From Styela clava (lineage: Eukaryota), in contig NC_135254.1 of NCBI RefSeq assembly GCF_964204865.1, positions 14,446,001-14,510,000 of the forward strand: a DNA stretch of 64,000 nucleotides, written 5' to 3'. This document shows, in pieces, positions 43,272 through 55,317 of this stretch. Both the position numbers and the translations under genes were made by a program. Position 1 is the first letter of the stretch. Each line of letters starts with the position of its first letter. The notes under the pieces are model-generated. The model ran no database searches and was not told where the DNA came from. It worked only from the letters and a program-made list of their open reading frames with translations.

Positions 43272-46200
43272 TTACAGCTTCGACAATTCCCCCTGATTGT
43301 CACCCACATTGTATTCCACCCAGTCTTGTGCGATTGGGGCAGAAAGCATTTCATCACTTAATTTGAATGATGAACAGAGATGAAGAGCATCAGGTGCAAG
43401 ATCTCGACATGCTTCAGCTGCAACTTCATTTACCTGAGTATAGAAAGTTAATTTTACCGTATATTATAACCATTTAATTCTGCAATCCCTAATGTTTTAA
43501 GTATGTCAAACACATGAGTGATAGGATAGGAAATACATATTATCTCAGAGGATATGAAAACTGATAAAATTGCTTAATCATATGCTGAAGCACGGACTCC
43601 CTATTACCAGACCATGTCTGGTATGGGATTAGTTAGCCATTTATTTGTTTGAGATACATGAACTTGATGGTGGAGGAAGCCGTAACCGATCACAGGTTAT
43701 ATGAACCACCCTATGGCGGTGAGGAGTCCAGAAACCACCGCAGGATGATCAGAGGTGCAATGTGAAGCATATTCCTAATGTTTAGCACGACACGCCACAC
43801 CGCCAAGCCTGCTGTCACCATGTCAGGTATGGTATAATTACGCAATTCAATTGTTTCCATGCATAGTTATGATAAGTAAAAAAAAGTCATCTTTTTAATT
43901 TGTTACTCGAACCTTAAAGATTTTGCAGGTCCGAATGTAGTCAGAGTTGTTTATCTGAAATAGCCCACTTTTAAAAGATGGTTGAAAGTACGATATAAGA
44001 TACTTTACCTGCTTTGCTATTGAAGGCGTGATGACCTCATTTGCCGCAAACCATCCAAGATCACGTTGAATAGTATCAATCAAAAATAAGTGATATAATT
44101 TTGATAAGATGGTTTTGAGTGATGAATGAGTATCTGGAGAATCAATTGTAAACTTCACCCTTTCGCTAATCAACCTTTCTCCATAAGATCTTGCAGCATT
44201 CTGGATGAAAAACAGATTCAATAAGTAATCATTTGAGTAAAATATTCAAAAGCAGAGCGCAACTTAATCATATGGCGAACCACCGCCTCTTGTCCGGTTA
44301 CCACTCGTATGGGATTAGTTAGCCAGATATTTTGTTTCCAGATGCATGAGCTTGATGTTGGAGGAAGGCGCAACCGACCAGCGGCTACATGAACCACCCT
44401 ACGACGGTGAGGATAGGAAAATAGTCATTCAATTATCTTTTACAGTCTAAAAAATACAGTAAACAAACTTAGTACCTGCACAAGATCGCTCTCTTGTAAC
44501 ATCCATGTATCGAAGATTTTGTCCATTCCTCCTTTCATTAATTTCACTCCAAGTTCAGAGAACTGAGAAGTCTCCCTTAGTTGGAGTAAATAATGAAGAT
44601 AAGCCGGGCTCTTCAAATCTGAAATAGAAACAAAGGAATAGTATGAATTTTTTAAAATATACAAATTAATTCAAGCAATTACAAAAGGCAATTTGACAGC
44701 TTATAAATTTGGAATATTGATAACCTATTTTAAATAAAGCATAATAAAATGATAGCAGCACTTCTTGTTTAAATATATAATCTTTATAAATATTGTTACC
44801 TGCTTCAACTGGTTCAAGTTTTTCAGGATTGAAAAGGTTTAATCTCTCTTTGGCAACTTTCTAAATGGTAAAGGCAAATTTGAGTCGCAATTAATCGAAA
44901 ACCCGCATCAATTTTACCATCTTATGGCTATGCTTCATATGCCAGACATTTCAAAGTCTCTACTCTATTAATCAACATCTGTTATGTTTAGGTTACACAT
45001 AAATATAACAAGAAAAATTAACCTGCATGAGAACGCTGTTGTCTCCTTCCGCAGTTATGGAAGCATGACTCGATCCAATAAATGTACCGAATCTGTTAAC
45101 ACTGAGGTAGCCCTGAGAAAGGAAAATATTTGTAATAGAAGTAAATGTATTATATTCAATCATTATCTATTACATGGTGGACAAGGGATTTGAATCAGAG
45201 AATTTTAAGTTGCCATGAAAACATAGCAGAGCTTTAATGCTTTAACCCAGGGGTGAATCACTTTCCAGGGTAGGTTCCAGATAACAGACCTTCTTACTGG
45301 GGTGGAGGGTCAATATTAAACTATGATTAAAAACAGTTTACGGTTTACAAAAACTAGCGTAACAGTTATGTACAACAAACATCTATTGTACCACCAAGTT
45401 GCACAATGATTAACAGGACCTCTGTATCCAGCTGCATGCGTCCAAGCAGCTTTTTTAAATCAGGCTTGAAGCTGCTTGTGCTGATTCGTTACACCGCTCA
45501 TAGGTTTGAAAACACTAGAGGAGATCTGTTTTTGCTTTTATTAATCTTCATACTTCGAAATAATAATTCAGAGATGGGTGAATTTGAGATCGCTCCTTAT
45601 GCACAATATATTCAGGTGCGAATAATGATAAGGAATTATGGTATTTATTTTAGCCGACGATTCGTTATTTCAATCGGTATTTTTAACGAAAATTTATATC
45701 CCTAAAAACCGTGTCATAATTTCAGCACGTACAAGTGGGCCAGATAAAATACTTTGGTGGACGTTATTGATCCCGCTGAAATTCTCTTAAACGTCATATT
45801 AGATTCATTCTCCAGTCTATTTTACTAGGATTTACCTGACCACCACATCTCTCTCTTGCTACAGCAGCCATTTCCACAGCATGCCATCCGATGATTGCTT
45901 TGAGAGCACAGCATAAAGTCACAACATTGAGATGGCCGGTTTTATCAGTCGGTCTCTTGGCCCATTCTTCTTTGACATAATCAAGAGCAAGATTCATGGC
46001 GATTGTTCGAGCCATGAAAGGCATAAGTGATCGTTGTTGCAACTAAAATATATGACTAGGTTAGAATGGTGCTAGGTTGGAATGGTAGTAAATGGTGTTA
46101 AATAAGGATATATTATAAAACAAAGCCAATATAATTATCATACAAAGACTACTCAATGTAGCTCATCCTCCACAGTATATACAGGGTGTCTCAAAAGTAA

Positions 46201-49200
46201 GTATACACTATATTAATTTTGATTTTCTTTTTAAATACTCATGATAGAGCGATCATTTATTCAGAAAACATAGTACGAATGAGTAGTAAAATTTGGGTAT
46301 TGTTTGCATTTTTCAACACCCACAGAATGACAAGGAGATTAACCCAAAAAATGAGGTGCAAAATTGCTGCTTGGCAATTTGGAATTAATTCGGCTCCTAC
46401 ACAACAAATAATTTATGTAATTCATTTTAAATTCATAGAAACTGGATCTGTAGTTGATGCAGAAAGATCAGGAAGACCAAGGAGCGGGCACTCTGAGGAA
46501 AACATTCAGAGCCGAATTAATTCCGAATTCTCTGTTAAAAAGAGTCACTGAGTTTGCCATACTGATTTATATGCTTCCTGCCAAACAGCAATTTTGCACC
46601 TTATTTCTTGGGTAATCTCCTTGTCATTCTGTGGGTCAATCAAAAATGCAAACAATACCTAAATTTTACTTCTTATTCATACTTTGTTTCATGAATAAAT
46701 GAAAGCTCTATGATGGGTACCTGAAAAGAAAATCAATATTAAAAGTGTATACTTACTTTTGAGACACCATGTATAATAAAAAAGGCAATTATCAGTGGCA
46801 AATCTGCAATAAGCGATTTGATTTGTTGGAAAAAATTATCCAAACCGACTTGGACACGAAATTCATTCTCAGTATAATTCATTTTGGAAAAAAGCTGTTC
46901 ACTGCAATATGTTCTTCCAAACATTCACATTACACATTTTGCATTGTCATGCAGATGAGTATACGAGTATAGGTGGATTTCTAGACATATTCATTATAAA
47001 GTTGCCAATCAGAACTGCACAATATATGGCAGACTTTTCTATGTTACCCAAACATTTTCATGTCAAATTTTGAAAATCAAAATTAACTAAACAGATAATT
47101 ATACCAACGCCAGGCACATTTGGCAAGTATACGACATGCAACTGACATGCCCTTTCTCTCCTGCTACTTACTCCATTGTTATGACATAAAATGTGTGCAG
47201 ATAATAATTAATGTATGAGCAATTTTGTGTTATTATGCATAAAGCATAAAAGTGGGGTCTCACAAAAAGTGAGGGCAACAAAAATTTTGTTTGCAGGCCG
47301 CAATTGGCCCGTGCCACCGCAATCAAGAACTAACCTGATACTGCAGAATTGCCATGTCAGATTTGCCTTGAGGACCAACAGTCATTCGAGTAGCTGCATA
47401 CCGCATTGATATGGAAAGACCAGCTTTTGCACAACCGATTGCCATTGAAGCAATACAAATACGTCCGGATAATAATTGGTCAGCAACAGTGAGGAATCTC
47501 CCACGATTACTTTTAATTGAGGTAGTAAATGTCCCGTCCTCTGCTACATCCGAATACCTGTAGTAGTGTAGAAGGATAGTAATTTTACATTTATATATTG
47601 AAAGCTGTTAAGATGGGCTAAACTTATAGAGAACTACAGCCTCTTGTCCAGTTACCTGTCCATCTTAGGTACTTGATTAGTCAATCAGTTTTTGGTTCAG
47701 ATGCATGGAATTAATGTTGAAGGATGCCATAACTGACCAGCAGTTACATTACCACTATGGTATGAGCCCAGCAATCTTCTTGTACATACCCCTCCTCAAT
47801 AGAGGTGCGATTGATTGCAAGCATACTTCTTATGCTTAGCATGATGAGAGAAACTAAGACAAGAAATACAAATTCCAAAAATGACTTTACAATAATTTGT
47901 TCTGAATTTCCTGAAATTGAATAAATGGGATTTTACCTTTATTATATAACATGTAAAAACAATATTATTAAACGTACATGGTAGATAGGGCTGTCCAAGC
48001 GAACCAAATATTCGAAATCGAATCGAATCGCAAATTATTCGAATCGTTTTTCGGCTAATTTCCGAATCACTAAAATTAGGTACAAAAAGCGGAAACCACC
48101 CTTGCAGGACGTTTTTCATCGGACAAGGGGCGGCGCTTCGAGCTTAGACCACTCTCGCTCCCGGCTTAATTGGTTTCCCAATATTTCTCTGCCTTCATTT
48201 TGTGATAAACATGTTATTCCTAATGCCTACCCGGTGGCACATGATCAGCCATTTCATGCATGGTCATCATAACTTAAAAGTTAGAATCGGTAATGACGTT
48301 TTTAAGAGAGTACACCATTTCATGCATGGTCATAATAACTTAAGAGTTATAATCTGTAATGACGTTTTTGAGAGAGTACACAAGGAGAAAAAAGGGCAAA
48401 TTAGAAAACGATAGTTCTATAAATAGAATCGATTTGAAGCTGTTGAGTTAGTTATCATAAGAACATGGTACAGGCAACTCAAAGCTGAAACAGGTGTTTT
48501 GGGATCCTTATGATGGCAATACCTTCTTTCAATGGAATATGTAATTTTTTATGATGGCAACACTGTATTATCCATCTATATACCAAGACAAATAATTGCA
48601 CTCTTGAATTTTGATTGCATATTATAGTCATCAAACTAGCTTCGAATTTGTTAAATGCAATTTTGAATTTGAGCAACAGTTTTATCTATATTAATGGTTG
48701 TTATTATTTTGCTGAAAATTACACAAAAAACATGAGACTAGTGAATAGGATTAGAATAGCATTTACAGGCTTTACATGTCCTATTAACACTGAATCCATT
48801 AGAATTGAGATTGCAATTTTTGAATTGTTTTGCAATTTTTACTCTTAACACTCAACAGTTTGAGACCCAAATTTTGGAGTCCTCCACTTTTTTTTGACCA
48901 GTTCATGCAAGCGTTTGATCACCTTTCATCTGAAATCATTGTATTGCAAAATACCAGCAGTAAGTAAGATGTAACTGCACATATGTTACCATAACATTGA
49001 AGGGTAGGCGGTTATTGTATAATAGAGACAGATTCAGGATTGCGCAACAATATTCGATTATTCGGTTCGATTCGGCAAAAATATTCGATTCGAATCAAAA
49101 AATTATTCGATTTTGGACAGCCCTAAATTGGTAGACAACCCAGACTTATTTTTGAGGTTGATATCGGAATGAATAACATGAACATAATTTTGCTAAAAAA

Positions 49201-52200
49201 TAAAATAAAATATATTTCCTACTTGTTTAGCAAATTTTCTCTTGGAACTCGTACTTTGTCGAAGGATAATTTGGCATTATCAACCCCATTTAATCCCATC
49301 TTGTGGCCCATGTCTTCAACTATGACCCCTGGCATCACTTTCATGTCATTGTCACGAATTCGCACCAAGAAGCCATGTATTCCATGATGGGTGCCATCCA
49401 CAGAAAGCTGATAGAAATGAAACGTAACAATGTGAAATGACACAAAGCTGAGAAGTTACACGCTCTGAGACAAGGGTTTTCAATCTGGCTAAATTGAAAT
49501 CTGGGGTCAAATTTCATCTGCCTCGGGGGTAAATTTTGCAGGCCAGAAAAATCACTTTTTGTTTTTATACAATAAAGCTATACATTTCTCTTCATAAGAT
49601 AACTAAATTTTGCTGAGTCATTAAGGCACGGCAATGTGGCTCATCGTGCTTAGCTTTAGGAATACGCTCGGCACCGCACCTCTGATTACTCTGCGTGGGT
49701 TCGCAGGTTCGAATCCCATGCAGGGATAGTTATGTGCGAGAGGATTGCTGGACTCCTCGCCACTGTAGGGTGGTTCACGTAACGCTGGTCGGTTACGGCT
49801 TCCTCCACCATGTCCATGCGCCTGGGAACGAATAACTAACTGATAACTGACTAATAACACCCGACATGGAATGGTAACCGGATGAGAGGCTGTGGTTCGC
49901 CATATGGTTAAACCGCCTTATCGACTTTTCTCTCCCTGGGATAATTATATATTCTTATCGTGCATCAATTCTTATATAGTATTTCTATAAGGTAAAGTAT
50001 TTAAGGGAATTTAAACTTTTGAAAAATTTGAATCATTAAACGCTCTGTTCAGGCAGTCTTAATTATTTTTTATTGTAAATAACAATATTATTATCTAATC
50101 TCGTCTTAATAATGCATAATGTATCACTTATTGTATTGTATTACTGTAATCAGTATTCTCTGAAGAATGTGAGTTAATACAAGATAAAAAAGATCATCTA
50201 TGCCCATAATGTCTTTTTTGGGAAAATAATTCAAGGAGCACTAGACTAGATAGAGTCCAGCTAGATTCCTTATAATCATATTCCCTCCCTACTTGAGACT
50301 TCTTTTTCAAAATGTTAGTGCAAGTGAAATATCATTGGCAAAATATCACTGAACCTAATATTGAAAAGCACTGTTTCAAACATGACGGGACCATTGTTTG
50401 AATAAAGACAACAGCCAAACCCTTAATCACACAACTCTTAATGTTAATAATCAAGGCGAGCTTACCTGTGCAAATACAATAATGTGTTTGGCATGAATAG
50501 CACCGTTAGTAATCCAATATTTCTGAGCTAGTGTTGTTGGTGTATTAATTATGAATTCTTGCGTTGCCTGAAAGTGAAAAACGGACAGAAATAATGATTT
50601 AGCAATCGAAATAATGCATCACGATACACGAAGATTGCTTTTCATATTAGGACATTTTTAAGAAAGACAAATTTTGCACAAAACAGCAAAACCGAACTTG
50701 ACATAATATATTGAAGCAAGAAAACTGAATGTGTTATATACGTTTACTGAAAAAATTATAACAAAAATATGTCTTTCAGCGTATATTATTGGGTTTTTCT
50801 AAATTTGAAGATGGCATTTGATACATTCTGTTGCAAACCTTAACAATCTTTAAAAACGTCTATTACACTGGATTTGCTATCAATTTGTAACTAGCCAAAT
50901 TTTGTTGAAATTTCGGTACTCCCGTAGTATGTGCACCAGGTTAGGCCATAATTTTATTCCGATTCTCCTTATTTTAGTTCTATACCAGTTCGGGGACTGT
51001 CTGTGTTAGCCAAGTGAATATCCCTATCCCCCCTGCCCATAGGTTTCAGTCCCTTTACACAACTTGATGTAAAGTAGGCAAACAAAATTAGTTACCTCCA
51101 TATTGGTACGCATACCGTACTTCTGGAGCGCCAACATTTTTATATCGAATAATAAACTGCCATTACACTTTTAATATTTTAGGTTTCAGAACATTAATTG
51201 GCAGTTTACGATTTCTGATCAGTTGACCAAATTCTTTTTCGATTTTAAGTTCCTGCCCTGATCAACAAATACCACATATGCCTCAAAATTATGCCAAATT
51301 ATGATTTCATACGTGAATAAGGGTACTAAAAAGTGTAACTTAGATCTCTAATAAAATAACTACTAGGTTTATATATGGCAGCCACTATTTGAAAATCCTA
51401 TTTGTTTTTCTGATACAAATTTACCTTGTCATATACTGCAGTTGTTTCCATCTCCACTGCGTTATTTCCGTAACCAAGTTCTGTCAGTCCAAAACATCCA
51501 ATGTCATGAAGGCTATCAATACCTGAACAAAACAAAAATTGATTTTAACAACCCTAACTTGCAGAGAGATGTGTTAATGGGAATATAAAAGAACAACATG
51601 TTGTTCTCACTGTTTTCCACTTCTCATTCCTTTTTTCACTACCTATCTTCAGAGCCATGATCCACGACAAGAAAAGGCACTAAATCATAAAAATTTCTCA
51701 ACACGTTTTATCCCGCTAACGTTCTGACTTGAACTGTCGCTTGTTAAATTGTCGAGAGCCAGCTGAGAAGCACAGCTCTTCATTTCACTTGGCCGTGTGC
51801 TCGGCTCAGGTGTTCAAGCTCCAAATTTCCATTCCACAGAATTTTTGACTCAAATTTTTTGGTTGACCACTGAATTGTTCAAATCCTTCGACTACGGAGG
51901 TATAGGTAATAATATATTCAGATTTGAAGTATTGATGCTTACCTTTGATAAGCATGTCATGATGTCGTTTTGTTCCAAGCATTACTATAGTTCCTCCAAA
52001 CAAATTAAACTGCACTGTCATTTTTGTTGCCATTGCAGGATCTATGATAGCTGCAATCTCATGAGCTGCAAAAATTCTTAGTGGATTATGCCAGAAGTCA
52101 GTGACAGATATGAAACCAGCCTGTAAAACAGTAAAGATGAATAAAATTTGTCAGTATTATTTATGATGCTTTTCAAGCATAATTCAGACAATCAATTCAA

Positions 52201-53672
52201 AAAAAAATCTTAATCTCACATCACAAATTCTCTGCAATCGTTGTAAAGCAACATCTCTCTCCTCTTCAAGAGATATATTGTATCTTGGAGTCATACAAGG
52301 ATCACTCATAAAGTCTCGAAACTTTGTTCGCATTTCATGATTGTCATGATCCAGTAACTTATTCATTTCATCAATGTCAAAAGATGGCTTGCTACCGCCA
52401 TTCCAATTTGACCTGTGTTTTTGAAAAATGTTTACATTGTTGTAAGGTATGGCCCCCACAAGATTACATAATAACAATTTTTAATTAGTACTTGTACATA
52501 TCAGCTCTTATTATCATAAGTTCAATTCAGATATAAATACTGAAACAACTAACTGGTAACAATTCCCATACCCGACATTGACTGGGAACCGAACGCGAGG
52601 CCATGATTGAGTCGTCTTATTGGTTTCCTCTATTCAGAGACAAATATGAAAATCCTAAAAGAACCCTTGCATGTGCATATTTAAGTCTTTGTCTCCCACG
52701 TCCCACTGAATATGGCTATAGAGAAGTGCATAGGGGAAACATGGTGGGATTCTCGGGGAAACATGCACTGAATACACCAATTTTTATGATCAAATTTTTC
52801 GAAGCCAGATCTAAATTCTTTCATTTGGTAATTCGGCGGGAGTCGCAATGGGGTAGGTATTGAAATTGAAAATTTCTCCGACCCCATAGCACAAGTATGT
52901 AAAGTTTGGAAAGGACGTGACTTGAACATAGAAACATAAGTAATTACTTACAAGATTTCAGGTGGGGTCATTTTGTTAGATAGAGTCTGATTCATAACCG
53001 CAGACGTACTACACAAAGTCTTTGTCATCAAATTGGAAGATTGATTTTGTTCGCAGATATTCATCTGAAATTTAGTCATTAATTCATATAAAGTACATAT
53101 AGTGCATAATATAAGTATAAATTTACATTTTGGTTTAAGAAAAAAAAACATTTAAAAATTCATTATTTCATGGAACGAATAATATTCAATTGATCATTTT
53201 AATTCTGCCAACTTGGCGATACTCTCGAATATAAGCTTACTAATAATATAAAAATTCAAAAGTAAAAATACAGAAATATCATTAGAGTATAAATATATAC
53301 CAAACCAGTCTCAAATATTGAAATCTGCATACCTTCTGACCTGAAAAAAAATGAAATGCATTGTAGAAATATGTGCTATATACACACTAAAAGTTGACAT
53401 AGTAAAGTGCCAGGGCAGCACGGTGATGATGGCAAATGTGCCTTAAACTTCTAATTTTGAAACAACAAAATTGCGTAATTCTGTACCGGTACCGTAATTG
53501 AGGGGGGATTGTATAGTCTTGCAAGTACCGGTATACTGTTGCGTAAAATCTAAATATAGTCACAAACCTTACCTTTTGACATCGTTGATATCTGTCTAAA
53601 ATTATTAACAGAATTGCAAGCTCTGAAAAACTGTCTGTAGTTAGCAAGAGAAATTCTTCCGGAAGACAGCAT
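43272..53672 (-). CDS. Acyl-CoA oxidase family protein, 15 exons, ~684 aa, N-terminal presequence-like segment and C-terminal PTS1 (SKL)
   Basis: Exons 53672-53573, 53340-53333, 53064-52952, 52412-52220, 52120-51943, 51522-51425, 50567-50466, 49407-49223, 47557-47335, 46042-45836, 45112-45023, 44860-44800, 44618-44476, 44200-44009, 43433-43272 (2055 nt, in frame). Motifs [50 protein letters not shown] (catalytic Glu), ELSKL*. Confidence 0.93.
43521..43806 (-). mobile_element. SINE family 1, degenerate, with internal deletion
   Basis: ataggatagg tail, body and head (cgccacaccgcc) homologous to 54418-54756. Confidence 0.8.
44262..44412 (-). mobile_element. SINE family 1 fragment
   Basis: catatggcgaaccac..ggattagtta..gaaccaccctacgacggtgagga matches the SINE body. 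Confidence 0.75.
45248..45780. mobile_element. hAT MITE, relative of 1497-2051
   Basis: CAGGGGTG start; interior (gcacaatgatt, ttaatcttcat, gatgggtgaatttgag, cgtcataatttc..cacgtacaagt) aligns with 1640-2030. Confidence 0.6.
46182..46771 (+). mobile_element. Internally deleted Tc1/mariner element with ~195-bp TIRs
   Basis: TA|CAGGGTGTCTCAAAAGTAAGTATACACT ... AGTGTATACTTACTTTTGAGACACCATG|TA. The core encodes [23 protein letters not shown], an N-terminal HTH/GRPR motif of Tc1/mariner transposases. Confidence 0.88.
46845..46960 (-). mobile_element. hAT transposase hATC remnant
   Basis: [17 protein letters not shown] matches the MFGSTY.CEQLFS.M consensus. Confidence 0.6.
47986..49125. mobile_element. 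hAT-type MITE
   Basis: TIR TAGGGCTGTCCAA / TTGGACAGCCCTA, subterminal TTCGA arrays, internal ~66-bp direct repeat at 48249-48381; TSD imperfect. Confidence 0.75.
49625..49950 (+). mobile_element. SINE family 1, full length
   Basis: A box TGGCTCATCGTG, B box GGTTCGAATCC, then the conserved body. Confidence 0.88.
50915..51132. mobile_element. MITE-like repeat with GG..CC termini
   Basis: Imperfect TIR ggtactcccgtagtatgtgcacca / tggtacgcata..cttctggagcgcc; relatives at 3248-3390 and ~5009-5090. Confidence 0.55.
52545..52657 (+). mobile_element. SINE family 1, 3' fragment
   Basis: aattcccatacccgac..gccatgattgagtcgtcttattggtttcctct..aaatatgaaaatcct. Confidence 0.65.
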
Positions 53673-54417
53673 GGTCAAATAATACAAAAACTCGAGGTTA
53701 GCCTAAATTCTACAGAAAAAAAGGTCTCAGCAACAGATTACTTGAAACCAGACAAACATCAAAGTCCAAAGGTCTGTACACTCTGCGGGAGACCGATTAC
53801 AAACTTGATCAACACGATTAGTCCATGCATGGGCCAAATAAAAAAGATTTGGTGTCAATTTCCGACCCACTCGCAATCTGTGTTGATAGGAGTCAAGAAT
53901 ATCGTTACTTTAGCAGTGCATAACGTAACCCCGTTATCGTGAATTTACATTGTCCTACTTTTATATTTTCCTTGTTTATTGGACCGCGTCAGTGTACATA
54001 ACGATCGTCTCAATATTATATTGTTGTTGATGTTATTATTCTTCTCTTTCGTCATGATGAAATCCCTTTTCTCTTCGAATACAGGACCAATTGTTTTGAA
54101 ATTTTCATCAGTTAAAGATTGATTTTTTTGCCAGAAAGCTATTACTTTTACCTATTTCAAAAATTTCTGTGGACTTTAGAGATTCGTTTGAGATGTGTCA
54201 GAATCAAAAATAGCGACACCTTGTGACATGTCCATATATTTGAGCACAACTCTCTTTTTCATTTAATATTAATTCTTGGATGTTTTGAATCAAAAAAGGG
54301 GAAATGATGCTTCTATTTTTATCAATCCCAAACAATCAAACAATACATGAAAAAATCCATGATGACTGTATTTTTTGGTTAACGAAATAATAAAACTCTC
54401 TATCTCTCTCCACGACT

Positions 54418-54756
54418 TAGGATAGGATAGGATTTACATATTTATCCCGGGGGAGAGGAAAGCCGATAAGACGGCTTATCCATATGGCGAACCCCGGCCT
54501 CTCGTCCGGTTACCATTTCAAGTCGGGTATGGGATTAGTTATATTGTTTGTTTTCGGAAGCATGGACTTGGTGGTGGAGGAAGCCGTAACCGTCCAGCGG
54601 TTACGTGAACCACCCAACGACGGCGAGGAGTCCAGCAATCCTCTCGCACATAATCATCCCTGCATGGGATTCGAATCTGTGAACCCACGCAGAGTAATTA
54701 GAGGTGCGGTGGCGAGCGTATTCCTAACGCTTAGCCCGTTGAGCCACACCGCCGGC
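54418..54756 (-). mobile_element. SINE family 1, full-length young copy (a second fragment follows at 54782-54892)
   Basis: Minus-strand head GCCGGCGGTGTGGCTCAACGG (A box), GATTCGAATCC (B box), (ATCCT)n tail. Confidence 0.9.
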
Positions 54757-55317
54757 TTCCTATTCATTCAATTCGTTTATCACGGTAAGCCGCGGCCTCT
54801 CGTCCGGTAACCAGTTCATGTCGGGTTTGAGAATAGTTTACCATATATTTATTTCAGATGCGTGGACTTGATGGTGGAGGAAGTTGTCACCGACACAAAT
54901 ACAGCAATCAAAAATTTTCGTGTATTAAAGTGATATTCTGGGAAGCACACGCATGGCGGCGACATAGAGCGGCCAAAATAACAAATCGTCCTAAATTTCC
55001 TCTTTATAACTCGGCGTTCATAATATACTGCTTCAGTTTTAATATAGTTCCGTTGAAGTCGGGCCGAAACCATTTTATACGTTGCCTTATTTTCTGGCGG
55101 AGGATAATTATTGAATGATATTCTAGTTACAATTTTTGCGCATAGTTACGAACGTCGATATCTAAGTTCTTCATAAAAAATGATGGTTCAATTGTGTTAG
55201 TACAGACGAAATTTCCCCTCAATAGGACTGATAGATACTTGTAGTATATTGTCTTTATTATTTAATATTGTAACTTTGTTCTACAATAAGCAGTGAAGCA
55301 ATAGTGATCAACCCATA

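Follow-up and report, generated by a model that had tools for sequence, protein, structure and literature searches.

An 8-nucleotide frame-holding microexon in the main transcript of a Styela clava acyl-CoA oxidase with a presequence-like N-terminus and an SKL C-terminus

The neural SRRM4-type microexons of bilaterians are mostly multiples of three nucleotides in length and are alternatively included. Small coding microexons are usually part of the major isoform, and about half of those in plants are not multiples of three (PMC8831610). It has also been reported that microexons missed by annotation lead to models of truncated proteins with long 5' UTRs (PMC8831610). Targeting of one gene product to mitochondria and peroxisomes has been described in mammals, where alanine:glyoxylate aminotransferase is directed to either organelle by alternative transcripts or starts (Danpure 1997, as cited in PMC3798809). 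Yeast catalase A, Ptc5 and other proteins have an MTS together with a PTS1 on one polypeptide and are sorted at the protein level (PMC3798809, PMC10906886).

The window analyzed here is a stretch of 64,000 nucleotides from the tunicate Styela clava (contig NC_135254.1, positions 14,446,001 to 14,510,000 of the forward strand). It contains a 15-exon acyl-CoA oxidase gene on the minus strand, in which an exon of 8 nt lies between the exon for the N-terminal leader and the remainder of the coding region (Table 1). A preliminary description of this DNA had proposed that the exon is a switch between organelles, with inclusion giving a presequence-bearing enzyme and skipping giving either a presequence-less form that ends in SKL or an mRNA that is degraded. 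The exon resembles the constitutive microexons of 15 nt or less found in a plant survey (PMC8831610) and in the MicroExonator study (PMC7821500): it is very small and internal, has canonical splice sites and belongs to the major isoform. The annotation outcome is also the same, in that the model which misses it has a shortened protein (648 versus 684 aa) and a long 5' UTR. However, it differs from these cases in that it is found in a tunicate gene, has a length of the form 3n+2, must be included if the frame is to be kept, and lies in a presumed targeting leader and not in a conserved domain. It is like the neural SRRM4-type microexons in size class and in having a strong pyrimidine tract ahead of its acceptor (PMC7821500, PMC12871342), but its length shifts the frame and inclusion alone is seen in the contigs.

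The locus can also be compared with the two dually targeted systems. As in alanine:glyoxylate aminotransferase, a single gene is predicted to encode an N-terminal mitochondrial signal and a C-terminal PTS1, however, no second transcript or start site that would remove the N-terminal signal was found among the S. clava contigs of four runs. As in catalase A and Ptc5, the dominant mRNA is predicted to encode both signals on one polypeptide. Unlike the S. clava protein, none of the examples considered from PMC3798809 and PMC10906886 is an acyl-CoA oxidase. A search for the phrase "mitochondrial acyl-CoA oxidase" gave no match in the collection of papers covered.

Table 1. Positions in the window of the exons and introns of the S. 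clava acyl-CoA oxidase gene.
Feature	Positions	Strand	Length (nt)	Remarks
Exon 1	53573..53835	-		first coding 100 nt are 53672-53573; basis: sequence and contigs
Intron 5' of microexon	53341..53572	-	232	
Microexon GTCAGAAG	53333..53340	-	8	in 4 of 4 runs; tttttttcag/GTCAGAAG/gtatgc
Intron 3' of microexon	53065..53332	-	268	donor AAG/gtatgc
Exon 3	52952..53064	-	113	entered in phase 0 at ATG (M37), after tttcag
Exon 4	52220..52412	-	193	conserved acyl-CoA oxidase N-terminal domain begins
Exons 5-15	43272..52120	-		acyl-CoA dehydrogenase middle and ACOX C-terminal domains

The coding part of exon 1 starts at the ATG at 53672, runs for 33 codons and one further base, and ends in phase 1 at the donor AAG/gtaagg. 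The 5' UTR in exon 1 is at least 163 nt long, and the contigs reach 53835, 53797, 53764 and 53745. The end at 53764 is a loose end in run X1 which, when compared by eye with the genome, is genome-like with a deletion of about 10 nt; it looks like an allelic 5' UTR variant and not like an upstream exon or a spliced leader. The microexon finishes codon G34 and encodes Q35 and K36, and in doing so leads from phase 1 to phase 0. Since the last base of exon 1 is the first of a codon and exon 3 needs a codon boundary, it is these 8 nt that hold the frame. The microexon is inside the open reading frame and is required for it: with it the product has 684 aa, and with exon 1 joined straight to exon 3 a stop, the TAG at 53011-53009, is met after 51 codons. 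Past this stop, further ATGs are found at 52995 and 52971. Exon 3 encodes the family-conserved motifs ..C-S-T-S.. and L-S-N-x-M-x-P-P, which are N-terminal to the oxidase domain, and its joint with exon 4 (52412-52220) has a phase 2 intron. At the end of the gene the final sense codons (43283-43275) encode S-K-L and are followed by the stop TAA at 43274-43272. By size the 8-nt exon, with its canonical AG and GT, falls within the coding microexons (internal, up to 30 nt). The preliminary description had given exon 1 as 100 coding nt that end in phase 1 at G/gtaagg, and exon 3 as entered in phase 0, and all of these coordinates check out. Its account of what skipping would do to the frame, a 51-codon upstream ORF that ends at TAG 53011-53009 with ATGs at 53064, 52995 and 52971, is also arithmetically correct on the sequence.

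Exons 1 and 3 are separated by 508 nt, and this interval contains 31 AG..GT/GC segments of 120 nt or less that restore the frame and are free of stops, so that sequence alone is insufficient as proof of the microexon, although the microexon scores best. Among the 20 candidates that use GT only, it has the best splice sites, with pyrimidines at 14 of 17 acceptor positions and a donor, gtatgc, that matches the consensus at 7 of 9. The acceptor has a run of 8 T before cag within the last 20 bases of the intron, and its pyrimidine count is near the top among the 14 acceptors of the gene. Overall the splice sites of the microexon are equal to or better than those of the constitutive exons of the gene. 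A single TGC is present upstream, at -18 to -16, beyond the pyrimidine run; it is uninformative.

The stretch is contained in 14 public sequencing runs. Nine of these carry about one quarter to one third of the sampled words, which is about the share of the exons and is as expected for RNA. Contigs of four of these runs, from three studies, were aligned to positions 51300-54400, and differences were listed from 1 in 100 (min_share 1). The contigs cover the exons and leave out the introns, whose ends read CT..AC (GT..AG when read on the minus strand), and thus represent spliced mRNA. In every one of the four runs one contig joins 53571 to 53066 and has four extra letters, TCTG on the plus strand. 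Read on the minus strand, the joint consists of the end of exon 1 (...AAAAG), GT, CAGA and AG, followed by ATGAAT. The GT of the joint is the aligner running into the gt of the intron and the AG is the ag of the acceptor taken by the aligner, so the letters inserted between exon 1 and ATGAAT are GTCAGAAG. This sequence is unique in the interval, at 53340-53333. Placing the inserted letters elsewhere was considered and rejected, because shifted splits require non-canonical sites, and 53340-53333 alone is flanked by AG and GT. In runs X2 and X4 one unbranched contig leads from the 5' UTR (53835 and 53797, respectively) through exon 1 and the microexon to exons 3-6, and all spliced contigs that reach exon 3 extend into the microexon and exon 1. 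The 8-nt microexon is genuine and, in each of the four RNA data sets, is part of the main mRNA. The spliced contigs of all four runs thus bear out the earlier claim of an 8-nt exon at 53340-53333 that restores the frame.

The preliminary description had suggested a comparison of the junctions 53573>53340>53064 and 53573>53064. At the level of contigs, inclusion is found in four of four runs and the direct joint in none of the four (three studies; assembled contigs, min_share 1). These are assembled contigs, from which rare variants are dropped, and not raw reads, and they speak to presence rather than to absence, tissue or level. Low-depth contigs that are colinear with the interval also occur (depth 6.5 versus 83 in run X1 and 4.4 versus 594 in run X7), and these look like unspliced RNA (or DNA). 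One low-depth contig represents a divergent allele, which over 547 nt differs by 20 substitutions and several indels. The stretch 53301-53399, which contains the microexon and both of its splice sites, is free of these changes.

It is quite probable that the 8 bases at 53340-53333 are a genuine coding exon that is included in all or nearly all of the mature mRNA of this gene. The role of the microexon would be arithmetical, in that an exon of 8 nt (3n+2) joins the presequence exon in frame to the enzyme. The residues G-Q-K are probably unimportant in themselves and the length alone may matter; they sit upstream of the C-S-T-S motif, in a leader or linker that evolves fast. How might so small an exon be spliced reliably? 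The short flanking introns (232 and 268 nt) may favour recognition of the intron as a unit, and the acceptor, with its 8 T and cag, would be of help. Given the short introns and the strong pyrimidine tract, the exon would probably need no special factor.

The N-terminus of the 684-aa product has the appearance of a mitochondrial presequence and its C-terminus is SKL, in agreement with the preliminary description. In the leader, the first acidic residue is at position 41 and residues 1-36 include 4 R and 2 K. The helical hydrophobic moment of the leader has a peak of 0.52 at residues 5-22, and a processing-type motif, R-Q-I-S-T, is located at residues 26-30. The leader is thus basic, acid-free and amphipathic and has a motif of the type R-x-hydrophobic followed by S/A, as is looked for in an MTS. 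The C-terminus, ...G-E-L-S-K-L followed by the stop, matches the PTS1 pattern [SAC][KRH][LM]. A ..S-T-S.. motif of the family aligns with the C-S-T-S of exon 3, and if the leader is cleaved at C-S-T-S, the G-Q-K encoded by the microexon would be lost with it. When read from M37, the N-terminus matches no targeting pattern, and its fifth residue is acidic. PTS2 is the N-terminal peroxisomal signal of plant ACX2 and ACX3. A PTS2 in place of the MTS, by analogy with these plant enzymes, was ruled out since the motif is absent: neither a strict nor a loose match to R/K-[LVIQ]-x2-[LVIHQ]-[LSGAK]-x-[HQ]-[LAF] near the N-terminus was found in the first 80 residues of P0270, P0271 and P0272 (see below) and of three other tunicate homologues.

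Pfam scans of the individual exons identified the acyl-CoA dehydrogenase middle domain (Acyl-CoA_dh_M) and acyl-CoA oxidase domains (ACOX_C_alpha1, ACOX). Two RefSeq models of the gene are available, and they form one 90% cluster of which they are the only members. XP_039270273.1 (P0270), "acyl-coenzyme A oxidase 3, peroxisomal-like" [Styela clava], has 684 aa, and its N-terminus is exon 1, G-Q-K and exon 3 (..MSK-G-Q-K-MN..). The 15-exon GT-AG model built from the window matches it at 683 of 684 residues, the one difference being I39/L39. The microexon is thus already encoded in this older public model, which is a computed one with no description of the microexon. XP_077969139.1 (P0265), "uncharacterized protein LOC120344988 [Styela clava]", is the newer model and has 648 aa. 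It starts M-N-I-C-E-Q at the ATG at 53064, ends in S-K-L and is missing the first 36 residues; the precomputed Pfam domains listed for it are PF01756, PF02770, PF22924 and PF00441. That G-Q-K is present in the older model and that the newer one starts at M37 fits the earlier remark that an 8-nt exon is easily missed by annotation. The M37 start could in principle reflect transcripts without the microexon. More simply, it would be explained by the failure of an aligner to place 8 nt (PMC8831610, PMC7821500). The locus is a clean case of an 8-nt frame-shifting exon that is present in one RefSeq model and gone from a later one. The newer model drops the entire putative targeting leader and would mislead a prediction of the localisation of the enzyme.

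A profile-free search with exon 4 gave 262 relatives, many of which are transcript fragments with long N-terminal parts, and a word search with the full-length match P0031 recovered the window's own protein, XP_077969139.1. The relatives come from cnidarians, crustaceans, molluscs, annelids, a bryozoan, tunicates and marine metatranscriptomes. Leader statistics were obtained for 97 full-length members with at least 55 residues before the D-H-D-N motif. The first 25 residues are acid-free with at least 3 R/K in 85 of these 97, versus 70 of 2165 internal 25-mers. R-x-hydrophobic-[SA]-[TS] is found within residues 10-75 in 49 of the 97 members and in 12 of 777 internal controls. Judging from these counts, a basic and acid-free N-terminus is a trait of the whole family, and the leader therefore belongs to the ancestral protein and has to be kept in frame.

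The closest relative is P0271, a transcript-derived protein of 683 aa that is 83% identical and ends in SKL. Its reading frame is open across the microexon region, and it has V where S. clava has M37, encoded by the exon 3 ATG at 53064. P0272, a second Phallusia mammillata paralogue, has the C-terminus E-S-K-L, and the combination of presequence and SKL is predicted for both P0271 and P0272. Among the full-length members fetched, PTS1-type ends are present in three lineages only, namely the two S. clava models, P0271 and P0272, and on this distribution SKL is taken to be a derived feature of the family. A second S. clava paralogue, on contig C9, was considered as a second instance of the microexon and rejected, since its leader is in one exon. 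In this copy the leader up to ..P-P-I-A-L-R is encoded by a single exon (L001 4398-4556), the intron after the leader exon is in phase 2, as is the one before exon 4 of the window's gene, and the C-terminus is N-Q-G-E-V-V (L002 2422-2535), with neither SKL nor a microexon. The duplication therefore yields no second instance. The microexon and the two short introns are specific to the SKL-bearing copy or its lineage.

Occasional skipping of the microexon, be it splicing noise or unproductive splicing that ends in mRNA decay, would lead to less enzyme and to no second protein, and is an unlikely but not unreasonable account. The premature stop would fall 57 nt upstream of an exon junction, and the general rule for nonsense-mediated decay is 50-55 nt. 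Very small exons are intrinsically harder to splice (PMC8831610), and processing intermediates do occur, in the form of the low-depth unspliced contigs of runs X1 and X7. No skipped junction is seen in the contigs, but rare and degraded forms would escape contigs anyway.

The organelle switch is a good deal less probable. It holds that regulated skipping produces the 51-codon upstream ORF, so that a start at 53064, 52995 or 52971 would give a presequence-less, peroxisomal enzyme with SKL, and that inclusion would give the mitochondrial or dual form. The frame arithmetic is correct, the gene does join a presequence-like N-terminus with SKL, and the use of alternative transcripts for dual targeting is well established (PMC3798809). 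In addition, the gene is a derived paralogue, the layout of intron, microexon and intron arose, or was kept, in the SKL lineage, and the newer RefSeq protein begins at M37. However, the included form alone is present in the contigs, and the skipped junction is in none of the four runs from three studies. M37 is V in the nearest relative, P0271, so the ATG directly after the acceptor is not conserved. A skipped mRNA would offer the ATGs at 53672 and 53582 first, both in frame and both with A at -3, so that skipping would mainly give the 51-codon upstream ORF; three short upstream ORFs in the 5' UTR would also be met before the ATG at 53672. The 51-codon ORF runs across the ATG at 53064, and its stop lies 57 nt ahead of the exon 3/4 junction, so that a skipped mRNA would be poorly translated and would be a likely target of nonsense-mediated decay. 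The strong splice sites of the microexon are also typical of constitutive exons (PMC8831610).

The preliminary description had named constitutive inclusion as the result that would overturn the switch. The evidence leans in this direction, with contigs being blind to minor or tissue-restricted skipping. It is highly doubtful that deliberate skipping in an unsampled tissue or condition gives a purely peroxisomal oxidase, whether ribosomes reinitiate at 52995 or 52971 or reach 53064 by leaky scanning. If it did, a frame-shifting microexon would act as a switch between organelles, in a paralogue whose SKL was acquired after an ancestrally mitochondrial-type acyl-CoA oxidase had been duplicated. 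Least probable, and very unlikely, is a separate transcript that starts within 53572-53065 or is without exon 1 and encodes the presequence-less protein: XP_077969139.1 does start at the ATG at 53064, but the contigs within the interval are all low-depth and genome-colinear, like unspliced RNA or DNA, the spliced contigs that reach exon 3 all go on into the microexon and exon 1, the N-terminus from M37, with its early acidic residue, is of no targeting type, and an aligner that misses 8 nt is the simpler explanation of the short model (PMC8831610, PMC7821500).

Constitutive inclusion, the preferred reading, puts both predicted signals on the same protein. If two organelles are reached, sorting between them most likely takes place at the protein level rather than through splicing; the signals may compete, or the protein may pass through mitochondria, as reported for other dual-signal proteins (PMC3798809, PMC10906886). 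In itself the microexon seems unremarkable, and the setting of its gene is of more interest. This gene is one of a clade of marine-invertebrate acyl-CoA oxidases that have mitochondrial-type leaders and no PTS1, and among the proteins retrieved SKL appears to have been added in one ascidian paralogue lineage only. If such leaders work, an oxidase that produces H2O2 would enter mitochondria.

The acyl-CoA oxidase gene belongs to a clade that is widespread in marine invertebrates and that is characterized by mitochondrial-type N-terminal leaders and the absence of a PTS1 (proteins P0031 and P0151-P0298). Members are found in cnidarians, crustaceans, molluscs, annelids, one bryozoan and tunicates. 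The N-terminus is basic and acid-free in 85 of 97 clade members, and the proteins usually end in ..NQGEV/L or ..VRKA. A hydrogen peroxide-producing oxidase in mitochondria would be unusual, and the phrase 'mitochondrial acyl-CoA oxidase' was not found in the literature searched.

Two RefSeq models of the gene differ at the N-terminus. XP_039270273.1 (684 aa) begins at 53672 and includes the leader and the 8-nt microexon; in the newer model, XP_077969139.1, listed as an 'uncharacterized protein' of 648 aa, the first residue is M37 (53064). The 684-aa form is backed by the four RNA data sets. In one of these runs, X1, the intron interval (53054-53600) is also represented by a haplotype that diverges by 20 substitutions and by indels of 1-8 nt across 547 nt. 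This haplotype shows no change in a 99-nt segment that surrounds the microexon (53301-53399), a weak indication, from a single allele, of constraint. The contig-supported 5' UTR contains three upstream ATGs, at 53830, 53826 and 53759, which begin short reading frames of 23, 2 and 10 codons, respectively, and which may exert translational control.

S. clava has a second paralogue of the same oxidase clade. A phase-2 intron before the oxidase domain is common to this paralogue and the gene studied here. The leader of the second paralogue is held in a single exon, there is no microexon, and the C-terminus is NQGEVV and not SKL. Phallusia likewise has a copy that carries SKL, P0272, and a copy that lacks it, P0161, and therefore the duplication of the oxidase may be older than the split of these ascidian orders.

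Features of the oxidase gene, its paralogue and the associated repeats
Feature	Position	Strand	Remark
Second paralogue	L001:4398-4556, L001:6279-6473, L002:2422-2535		stretches of genome contig C9 (G000), about 1265.4-1273.5 kb
Upstream ATGs	53830, 53826, 53759	-	ahead of main ATG 53672
Repeat copy	54484-54810	+
Repeat copy	49621-49860	-
Repeat copy	43649-43765	+
Repeat copy	L001 3538-3759	-

The four copies listed are of one interspersed repeat, recognised by a common pseudo-ORF (including a stretch of 38 residues), and they are located within oxidase-gene introns and close to the second paralogue. Directly upstream of the gene, at 54004-54315, the summed contig depth is very high (up to about 3500). 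Numerous short contigs, 90-95% alike, make up this depth, which suggests an abundant family of repeats, transcribed or multi-copy.
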